DNA of 64,000 bases, from sequence record PQ330092.1; one strand, 5' to 3'. Made by a program: the position numbers and the translations under genes. Positions 12,954 to 13,121 of this stretch are shown here, in pieces. The notes under the pieces are model-generated. The model did no database searches, was not told the origin of the DNA, and was given only the letters and a program-made list of their open reading frames with translations. Position 1 is the first letter of the stretch. Each line of letters opens with the position of its first letter.

Positions 12954-13121
12954 ATGAAAGATATTTTTACAATAGATGCTAACGTTATATATGATTTTTA
13001 TCTTACTGGTGGTGTAAAGGTAACGGGTACTGTGATTGATGTTTGTGATAATGGTATAATCTTAAGTGATGGCACTAGAGTTGTCCAAACACACATCATT
13101 ATGTTTGTCCCACATGTATAA
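12954..13121 (+). CDS. Hfq/Sm-like small protein (55 aa, not in the ORF track)
   Basis: Manual translation [55 protein letters not shown]; aligns by eye to the Hfq Sm1/Sm2 pattern. Confidence 0.6.

Follow-up and report, generated by a model that had tools for sequence, protein, structure and literature searches.

What does the short open reading frame (ORF) behind the ribonucleotide reductase gene nrdB of RaK2-like jumbo phages encode, and how might its product act? The question arose from a stretch of 64,000 nucleotides of sequence record PQ330092.1 (the window; all positions below are counted from its first nucleotide), in which a preliminary description, made from the letters alone, had noticed a 55-residue ORF, aligned its translation by eye with Hfq of E. 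coli and suggested that it may be either a phage RNA chaperone or a dominant-negative subunit that poisons host Hfq. Here we report that the ORF is well supported as a genuine gene, that its product is predicted, again with good support, to adopt an Sm fold with Hfq as the nearest structure, and that the family lacks most of the residues with which Hfq brings RNAs together. As its function we tentatively propose an acidic module that would bind a basic partner. The element under study is the following.

12954..13121, + strand: coding sequence of the 55-residue, helix-less protein of predicted Hfq/Sm fold (JP4 CDS0017, the same as 121Q gp34 and phrog_17251)

The ORF behind nrdB is a conserved gene of jumbo phages

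The ORF list and its translation place an ATG at 12954 and a TAA at 13119-13121 on the + strand, so that both the location downstream of nrdB and the protein itself were as first described. The surrounding region (11800-14600) is 100% identical, at equal coordinates, to Escherichia phage JP4, and 96.6-99.9% identical to 121Q, PBECO4, phAPEC6 and other Asteriusvirus-type jumbo coliphages (320-390 kb). The statement that the ORF is unannotated holds for RaK2, K64-1 (AB897757), phAPEC6 and slurp01, whose annotations leave it out, but not for JP4 CDS0017 and 121Q gp34, where it carries the public label "membrane protein" or hypothetical. The phrog_17251 profile matches the protein over residues 1-55 (E 1.1e-31), and a 121Q-type genome contains one copy only of the gene.

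A tblastn search recovered the ORF from 71 phage records; the identity is 100% for phages of E. coli and Salmonella and falls to 33-45% for Cronobacter GAP32, Pectobacterium CBB, Yersinia fHe-Yen9-04, Xanthomonas XbC2, Salmonella Munch, Erwinia Hallingskeid and E. coli EJP2. All ten further genomes inspected share the gene order nrdA, nrdB, 55-residue ORF, an ORF of ∼77 residues, usually a virion structural protein and a MazG-like pyrophosphohydrolase, and some of the genomes have a homing-endonuclease-type ORF between nrdA and nrdB. Even in three highly divergent metagenomic relatives, the homologue lies directly 3' of a gene matching Pfam Ribonuc_red_sm. The place behind nrdB was kept in each of the RaK2-like phages examined, at identities as low as 30%. 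The two features next to the ORF that bear on its reality as a gene are as follows.

11779..12903, + strand: nrdB, the invariable upstream neighbour (ORF list and annotation)
12943..12946, + strand: Shine-Dalgarno-like GGGT, 8 nt before the ATG (sequence reading)

In the other phages of an 11-phage alignment, a GGAG or GGA Shine-Dalgarno site occurs 6-8 nt 5' of the start codon. Further, across the 53 ungapped codon columns of these 11 phages, the entropy at codon positions 1, 2 and 3 is 1.01, 0.80 and 1.40, respectively, which is the pattern of a coding sequence. We relied on this pattern rather than on the pairwise ratio of nonsynonymous to synonymous substitution rates (0.3-0.87) because synonymous sites are saturated. 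Overall, because the position after nrdB is kept, a Shine-Dalgarno site is present and the substitutions follow a coding pattern, there is good support for the 55-residue ORF as a true, protein-coding gene in jumbo phages of the RaK2/121Q type.

The protein is predicted to adopt an Sm fold with Hfq as its nearest structure

AlphaFold2, run on the family alignment (A4, 58 members), produced a model with a mean predicted local distance difference test score (pLDDT) of 95 and a predicted template modelling score of 0.77. In this model, an N-terminal segment that is extended leads into strands 12-17, 21-31, 34-37, 42-44 and 48-54, and residues 45-47 form a helical turn. The same five strands were obtained for a GAP32-type homologue (35% identical; pLDDT 87), which has low-confidence tails and, likewise, no N-terminal helix. 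Thus, the AlphaFold2 models of two members both describe a five-stranded, strongly bent antiparallel Sm barrel, and its topology is of the Sm type, strands 4 and 5 being joined by a 3-10 turn. The N-terminal α-helix that carries Q8 in Hfq is absent: in neither model does DSSP assign one ahead of strand 1, residues 1-11 run extended with a consensus Pro at position 9, and a conserved extended segment, D-I-F-x-F-D, stands in place of the helix.

Structure searches, which the preliminary description had named as a check of the fold, ranked Hfq first for two divergent members, both with Foldseek and with VIA-align. Foldseek against the PDB returned Hfq chains only for both models, with template modelling scores of 0.70-0.76, root-mean-square deviation (rmsd) values of 1.1-2.0 Å over 47-49 columns, 22-33% identity and E values of 3e-3 to 7e-3 for the first model, and E values from 1.4e-3, rmsd values mostly of 1.1-1.7 Å (up to 6.6 Å) and 21-28% identity for the GAP32-type model. 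VIA-align, which is independent of Foldseek and searched 48,161 representatives, placed Hfq in seven of its first ten rows (Z 7.9-8.5), with Caulobacter Hfq at 8.5, Thermotoga and Aquifex Hfq at 8.1, and a Methanococcus Hfq-like protein and E. coli Hfq at 8.0, the last being a chain of the T4 neck complex 9lu5. A biotin-ligase C-terminal domain (rank 8, Z 7.6) and an archaeal SmAP (rank 9, Z 7.5) came next, and the lower rows held SmAP, LSm and Edc3 domains (Z 7.5-6.2) together with YaeO (6.9), RimP (6.4) and an MscS domain (6.3). When the top 1000 Foldseek matches were re-scored, 34 chains reached a Z of at least 8, all listed ones being Hfq, and SmAP and LSm reached 7.8. Because a Z near 8 is middling on this scale and rows within 1 unit are tied, we read these results as "Sm fold, Hfq nearest", a reading that the models support well and that is not proof of membership in Hfq.

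Set beside known structures, the protein is most similar to Hfq (PF17209; E. coli PDB 1hk9 and 4pno, Caulobacter 6gwk), which shares the bent barrel of five strands, including the 3-10 turn that precedes strand 5, and matches the model best (Z 8.0-8.5 at 22-27% identity, with an rmsd of 1.8-2.1 Å over 55 residues). It shares its fold with the Sm/LSm proteins as well (PF01423; 1i8f, 6tfl and the Edc3 LSm domain 2rm4; Z 6.2-7.8) but, unlike them, has neither a helix nor an Sm2 loop of the R-G-D type.

These models bear directly on the public label. phrog_17251 and several GenBank records call the product a membrane protein, and a small membrane protein is what this PHROG-derived label would imply. 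However, the best 19-residue Kyte-Doolittle window in eight members reaches only 0.4-1.5, below the usual threshold of 1.6, conserved Gly, Asp and Asn turns interrupt every hydrophobic run, and no transmembrane segment that would justify the label was found. Given this hydropathy and the confident models of a soluble all-β barrel, the label is probably wrong, and we attach next to no credence to a membrane protein.

The family is new and restricted to one phage lineage

We next considered how far sequence searches extend the family. A word-indexed protein search returned 4 proteins with the single query and 41 with a 13-phage alignment, and a search for related loci with the single protein returned 121Q only. 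An exhaustive hidden Markov model (HMM) search of 1.84 billion protein representatives yielded 30 proteins at E ≤ 0.001, about 24 of which are small (43-104 residues); the long matches (P0057, P0059, P0062 and P0065) are repetitive Ig-like or β-rich proteins and were set aside as spurious. This exhaustive profile search recovered no Hfq and no LSm protein. Within the 58 members, G34 is invariant, and F5, Y13, L17, G25 and I48 are conserved at 90% or more.

Named families were approached, if at all, below threshold. The 55-residue protein had no significant match in Pfam, NCBIfam or the PDB (phmmer), and profile searches of PDB sequences gave marginal values (E 0.07-1.4) for Hfq, the Edc3 LSm domain (E 0.5-0.9), the biotin-ligase C-terminal barrel and unrelated proteins. 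The Pfam Hfq model (PF17209; cut-off 27 bits) matched two of the 58 members at sub-threshold scores (best 16.1 bits, E 0.0089), one member, P0039, aligning over HMM positions 17-59 with 16 bits. The window protein itself did not match PF17209, nor did a six-frame scan of a 121Q-type genome, and the LSM model (PF01423) found nothing in that genome at E up to 10 and nothing among the 58 members. Three members matched DUF6897 (PF21838; cut-off 23.9 bits) below its cut-off (best E 0.0016), the orthologue in the 121Q-type genome scan remaining unmatched. A language-model feature search placed the clusters of DUF6897, DUF2642 and Hfq nearest, at 0.86-0.89, with DUF6897 the nearest named family (0.88-0.89); these values serve as leads only. 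DUF6897 comprises stand-alone proteins of ∼58 residues from Bacillota, methanogens and viruses and is thus similar in size, and since its function is unknown the link provides no mechanism. The sole match of the family profile in E. coli K-12 (NC_000913.3, 2345195-2345329, - strand; E 0.06) lies antisense inside nrdA and was dismissed as chance. No earlier account of an Hfq-like protein from RaK2-like phages came up in searches of the literature, nor anything on DUF6897.

Overall, the 55-residue proteins are a new, lineage-restricted family within a known kind, the Sm/LSm-like proteins of phages, the Sm fold being common. What sets the family apart is a bare, helix-less, acidic barrel of 55 residues that is nearest to Hfq and always follows nrdB in the RaK2-like jumbo phages examined.

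Sequence similarity to Hfq is confined to Sm1

The by-eye alignment with E. coli Hfq was reproduced in two ways. BLASTP against the K-12 protein gave 14 identities over 39 residues (36%; E 0.007 for a single comparison), and hhalign of the family alignment against 55 distinct proteobacterial Hfq core sequences aligned residues 11-39 with Hfq 20-48 (score 27.2, probability 76%), above the maximum of 200 column shuffles (mean 9.5, sd 2.1, maximum 19.2) and above the reversed profile (6.7). The similarity is limited to Sm1; when a longer or global alignment was forced, Sm2 was not sensibly aligned. Within Sm1, whose pattern L-x-G-G-x-x-h-x-G is shared with Hfq, G20 (47 of 58 members) and G25 (55 of 58) align with Hfq G29 and G34, so that the Sm1 glycine spacing noted in the preliminary description stands, the two glycines lying five residues apart. 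The hydrophobic core pattern is also kept, as are three of the four residues of the Hfq F39-D40-Q41-F42 loop, in the form [R/Y/F]31-D32-N33 followed by Gly.

By contrast, the parts of Hfq that handle RNA are largely gone. The position of Hfq F42 is Gly in all 58 members, and Q41 is the only pocket residue conserved in kind, as N33 (Asn in 40 and Asp in 17 of the 58). Hfq Y55-K56-H57 is replaced by T/Q45-D46-K47, the K56 position being mostly Asp, so that neither the Y-K-H motif of Sm2 nor the proximal uridine pocket (Q41, F42, K56 and H57) is retained as such. The Sm2 His that had been noted is indeed present in the window protein, as H47, but is limited to the E. coli-phage clade; it is not a feature of the family, in which only eight of 58 members have it and the consensus is Lys (39 of 58). 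The arginine rim is missing too: R16, R17 and R19 correspond to F/I7, D/E8 and N/E/D10, and K47 to D/G/T39. Both absences initially reported, of the N-terminal helix and of the rim, are therefore confirmed, by the two models and by this column mapping. The Hfq V54 position is Pro in 48 of the 58 members, positions 50 and 52 vary, and no Hfq-type C-terminal tail is present. C31 is specific to one clade, and the family has no conserved Cys or metal-type residues. Finally, D3, D8, D29, D32 and D46 are conserved acidic positions, and the family is acidic rather than basic, with a mean net charge of -3.6 for the 55-residue core (range -6 to +1), compared with +3 for residues 1-65 of E. coli Hfq, and isoelectric points of 4.2-5.5.

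Matchmaking between small RNAs (sRNAs) and mRNAs by Hfq requires both the rim arginines and the proximal pocket. Because both are missing, canonical sRNA chaperoning by the 55-residue protein appears unlikely from its sequence. The proposal of an RNA chaperone of the Hfq type thus fares poorly, the helix with Q8, the residues R16, R17 and R19, F42 and K56 being absent or reversed in charge in an acidic family. More generally, neither of the two functions put forward in the preliminary description follows from the claim about the fold.

The second of these functions, a dominant-negative subunit that would enter host hexamers through its β4 and β5 edges and disable sRNA control, could draw on the shared fold, on the 22-28% identity to enterobacterial Hfq in structural alignments and on the retention, in the E. 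coli-phage clade, of H47 at the position of the interface residue H57. It is weakened because the β4/β5 interface that it requires is the most variable and least Hfq-like part of the family (Pro at V54 in 48 of 58, Lys at H57 in 39 of 58, variable residues at 50 and 52), whereas the cores of host Hfq proteins are nearly invariant. Nor does the protein have the helix that, in Hfq, forms part of the contact between subunits, and the profile alignment stops at Sm1. We regard poisoning of Hfq as very unlikely.

A small acidic binding module is tentatively favoured

The reading that we favour, and that we hold to be possible rather than probable, is that the protein is a small, probably self-associating, acidic binding module that docks on a basic partner through its loop face. 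Whether related to Hfq or similar to it by convergence, it would have been stripped of the matchmaking apparatus (F42, K56, the arginine rim and the Q8-bearing helix) and turned acidic. Two loops, [R/Y/F]31-D32-N33-G34 and T/Q45-D46-K/H47, would hold the clustered conserved polar residues; their counterparts in Sm rings point towards the pore and the proximal side. D3, D8 and D29 would extend an acidic patch on this loop face, and self-association would bury the hydrophobic faces of strand 5 and the N-terminal I-F-x-F. We suggest such a module because the conserved loops lie at the ligand site of Sm proteins, the conserved surface is acidic, and strand 5 and I-F-x-F offer hydrophobic faces. 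The module would be made alongside the enzymes of DNA-precursor synthesis, and its partner might be a basic nucleic-acid-binding protein of host or phage.

A parallel may be seen in Rof (YaeO; PDB 6jie), a small Sm-like barrel that acts on a protein rather than on RNA and would show how a monomeric Sm-like protein can block the RNA site of Rho; Vibrio YaeO matches our model at Z 6.9. Rof occupies the RNA site of Rho and makes its contacts mainly through its N-terminal helix (PMC11018626).

Several points weigh against the binding module. The parallel with Rof is imperfect, in that the 55-residue protein has no N-terminal Rho-binding helix and, at an hhalign probability of 0.6%, shows no sequence relationship to Rof. 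A protein of negative net charge may still bind RNA in a pore pocket, and there are acidic archaeal Sm proteins that nonetheless bind U-rich RNA. The sequence makes a reduced nucleotide pocket conceivable, because 57 of the 58 members have Asn or Asp at N33, which stands at the Hfq Q41 position, and 46 have Arg, Tyr or Phe at position 31. In the structural comparison, Hfq and Sm proteins are separated by less than 1 Z unit, that is, they are tied at a middling Z near 8. Evidence for expression is weak as well: one contig of a wastewater metatranscriptome spans 12978-13128 at depth 8, where carry-over of DNA is possible. Contigs of this kind cover parts of the 3,001-nt stretch that was compared with reads, at depths of 2-10, which is no proof of transcription, and the sole RNA run with raw reads had 0 reads on this stretch and hence provides no test. 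Expression of the gene is thus only weakly indicated.

Some of the same observations lead to the first alternative, an Sm-type RNA-binding ring that would oligomerize like Hfq or SmAP and hold single-stranded RNA at its pore through the L3 and L5 loops, with phage or host transcripts, for example from the tRNA/noncoding RNA region, as ligands. The closest structures, Hfq and Sm/LSm, are mostly RNA-binding rings, the Sm1-type similarity lies well above the shuffle null, and P0039 aligns with Pfam Hfq positions 17-59 at E 0.0089. Moreover, the best-conserved polar loops are the uridine-binding ones of Sm and Hfq proteins, with N33 at Q41 and K/H47 at H57, and the early LSm-like proteins of T4 are linked genetically to mRNA level (PMC12152347). 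Against an RNA ring stand the invariant Gly at F42 and the Asp found mostly at K56, the missing Q8 helix and a rim in which R16/R17/R19 have become F/D/N, six conserved acidic positions with a core charge of about -3.6, and Pfam Hfq and LSM models that stay below threshold or silent. On balance, we consider an RNA-binding ring rather doubtful, though less so than the other alternatives.

The gene probably ends the nrdA-nrdB transcription unit

The signals around the gene that bear on its transcription are as follows.

12913..12939, + strand: terminator-like hairpin of nrdB with T run (11-bp stem, 3-nt loop; -16.5 kcal/mol, z -3.3)
13126..13155, + strand: promoter that serves the following transcription unit (-35-like box TTGGAA, 18-nt spacer and extended -10 TGCTATAAT; 10/12 with TG in the promoter scan)
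7450..7458, + strand: nearest upstream extended -10 promoter of this class (TGAGACA ... TGCTATAAT; pattern search), the probable start of the unit

The hairpin begins 10 nt after the nrdB stop codon and ends 15 nt before the ORF start, and it recurs at the equivalent place in 11 of 11 aligned phages with its pairing kept, although the stem sequences differ. A terminator-like hairpin also follows nrdA (11730-11749). The downstream promoter starts 5 nt past the ORF stop codon; its TGnTATAAT is invariant in 11 of 11 phages, and its -35-like box reads TTGGAACA in the window and TGAAAC in most other phages. In phage CBB, "divergent RpoD-like" promoters composed of TGAAACG and a -10 box have been described before DNA-synthesis genes, and the promoter after the ORF fits this class (PMC5259590). 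Longer homologues end in a conserved C-terminal E-T-P-E tail, predicted to be disordered in the GAP32-type model. Because the codons of this tail overlap the -35 box of the downstream promoter, part of its conservation may be due to the promoter and not to the protein.

A search of the + strand found no TGnTATAAT site between 7458 and 12954. Since the site at 7450 also has a -35 of the matching type, we infer that the ORF would be the last cistron of a unit that runs from ∼7450 through nrdA and nrdB by read-through of the two hairpins. Two candidates for a promoter closer to, or within, the ORF were rejected. A TATAAT at 12947-12952 is not kept in other phages, which there have a Shine-Dalgarno site and spacer, and TGGTATAAT at 13052-13060 corresponds to the D-N-G-I codons and is restricted to this clade; it is probably coincidental because it is absent from the other phage clades.

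This arrangement bears on a further alternative, in which the protein would be an accessory factor of the phage ribonucleotide reductase or of deoxynucleotide synthesis, for example an adaptor for NrdB/NrdA, the MazG-like pyrophosphohydrolase or dihydrofolate reductase (DHFR). The gene is always directly 3' of nrdB, the most divergent relatives included, is probably co-transcribed with nrdA and nrdB, and shares its block with MazG-like, DHFR and RNase H genes. However, adjacency to nrdB is not specific evidence, given that the phages of this lineage share the entire block in collinear order, and a terminator-like hairpin separates nrdB from the ORF. The family also has no conserved Cys or metal-type residues, and no accessory protein of ribonucleotide reductase (NrdH, NrdI, YfaE) is known to have an Sm-type fold. 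We consider such a role improbable.

Other features of the window and of related genomes were recorded alongside. TGnTATAAT occurs at 28 sites in the window against 8.6 expected, an approximately threefold over-representation (e.g. 1061, 7450, 13147, 17062, 54400, 59097, 60146, 60919 and 61811); these sites often have TGAGACA, TGGACA or TTGACT 17-19 nt 5' and an A-rich stretch, and several lie directly 5' of tRNA genes. Eight tRNA genes cluster at 58324-63759 on the + strand, and the tRNA-Ser at 61830-61921 was called with the unusual anticodon ACT. The gene after the ORF is annotated with a start at 13184 (..13417) in JP4 and at the equivalent of 13154 in 121Q. The sequence favours 13184, because transcription from the conserved -10 at 13150-13155 would begin only past 13154 and a GGAG lies 7 nt upstream of 13184. 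The product of this gene (phrog_16437, function unknown) is acidic in its N-terminal half and ends in a C-terminal tail that is rich in Lys and Arg and very basic. In fHe-Yen9-04, XbC2, CBB and GAP32, an extra ORF of ∼250 residues, called "endonuclease" in GAP32, lies between nrdA and nrdB, and the nrdB annotation of fHe-Yen9-04 covers no more than a 429-nt piece. The extra ORF and the fragmentary nrdB annotation suggest insertions of mobile elements in the nrd region of relatives.

Comparison with Sm-like proteins at work in phage T4

T4 offers two points of comparison. [quoted passage not shown] Like the 55-residue protein, they are phage-encoded, helix-less five-stranded LSm-like barrels; the T4 proteins are early, and Frd.2 likewise lies in a nucleotide-metabolism gene cluster. 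In contrast to them, the 55-residue protein is a bare single domain and is nearest to Hfq. An hhalign comparison, which covered Frd.2 of the three, gave a score of 11.4 and a probability of 0.4%, and T4 nrdB.1, nrdA.1, nrdA.2, frd.1, frd.2 and frd.3 show no profile similarity to the family.

The other comparison concerns virion assembly. In T4, a hexamer of host Hfq is borrowed and sits transiently, as a plug, beneath the gp13/gp14 neck, which Hfq contacts through its basic face (PMC12929587). A phage-made stand-in would use its own ring for a step resembling the neck plug. The T4 complex itself, whose Hfq chain (9lu5) matches our model at Z 8.0, would fit this idea, as would the distant kinship of RaK2-like phages with T4 (PMC5259590) and neighbouring genes annotated as virion structural proteins. 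However, the T4 contacts use the basic Hfq face (K31, Q33, T49, R19 and S65) on acidic gp14, and in the acidic 55-residue protein the equivalent positions are variable. The gene also lies in an early/middle-type unit with no late promoter in front, and no records examined annotate it as a virion protein. We judge this role highly improbable. A wider formulation, in which a stripped-down Hfq fold does a job other than matchmaking, either as a substitute for the T4-style neck plug or as an acidic Sm decoy that would disable Rho or Hfq during the DNA-synthesis phase, seems to us unlikely.

Whichever partner the favoured binding module may have, the family adds to a picture that is only beginning to form. 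Recognition of Sm-like proteins in phages has only just begun, T4 GoF/MotB.1/Frd.2 being the main example, and the part of host Hfq as a structural helper of the T4 neck was shown in 2026. A gene present in dozens of jumbo-phage genomes as a "membrane protein", or left unannotated, can now be re-labelled as a protein of predicted Hfq/Sm fold, and a conserved arrangement of terminator, small gene and middle-type promoter has been mapped at the end of the nrdAB unit. A second phage lineage keeps, under strict conservation, a minimal Hfq-like barrel without the RNA residues of Hfq, which provides a compact test case, 55 residues long, for the part that an Sm fold may play in phages where it does not serve as an sRNA chaperone.

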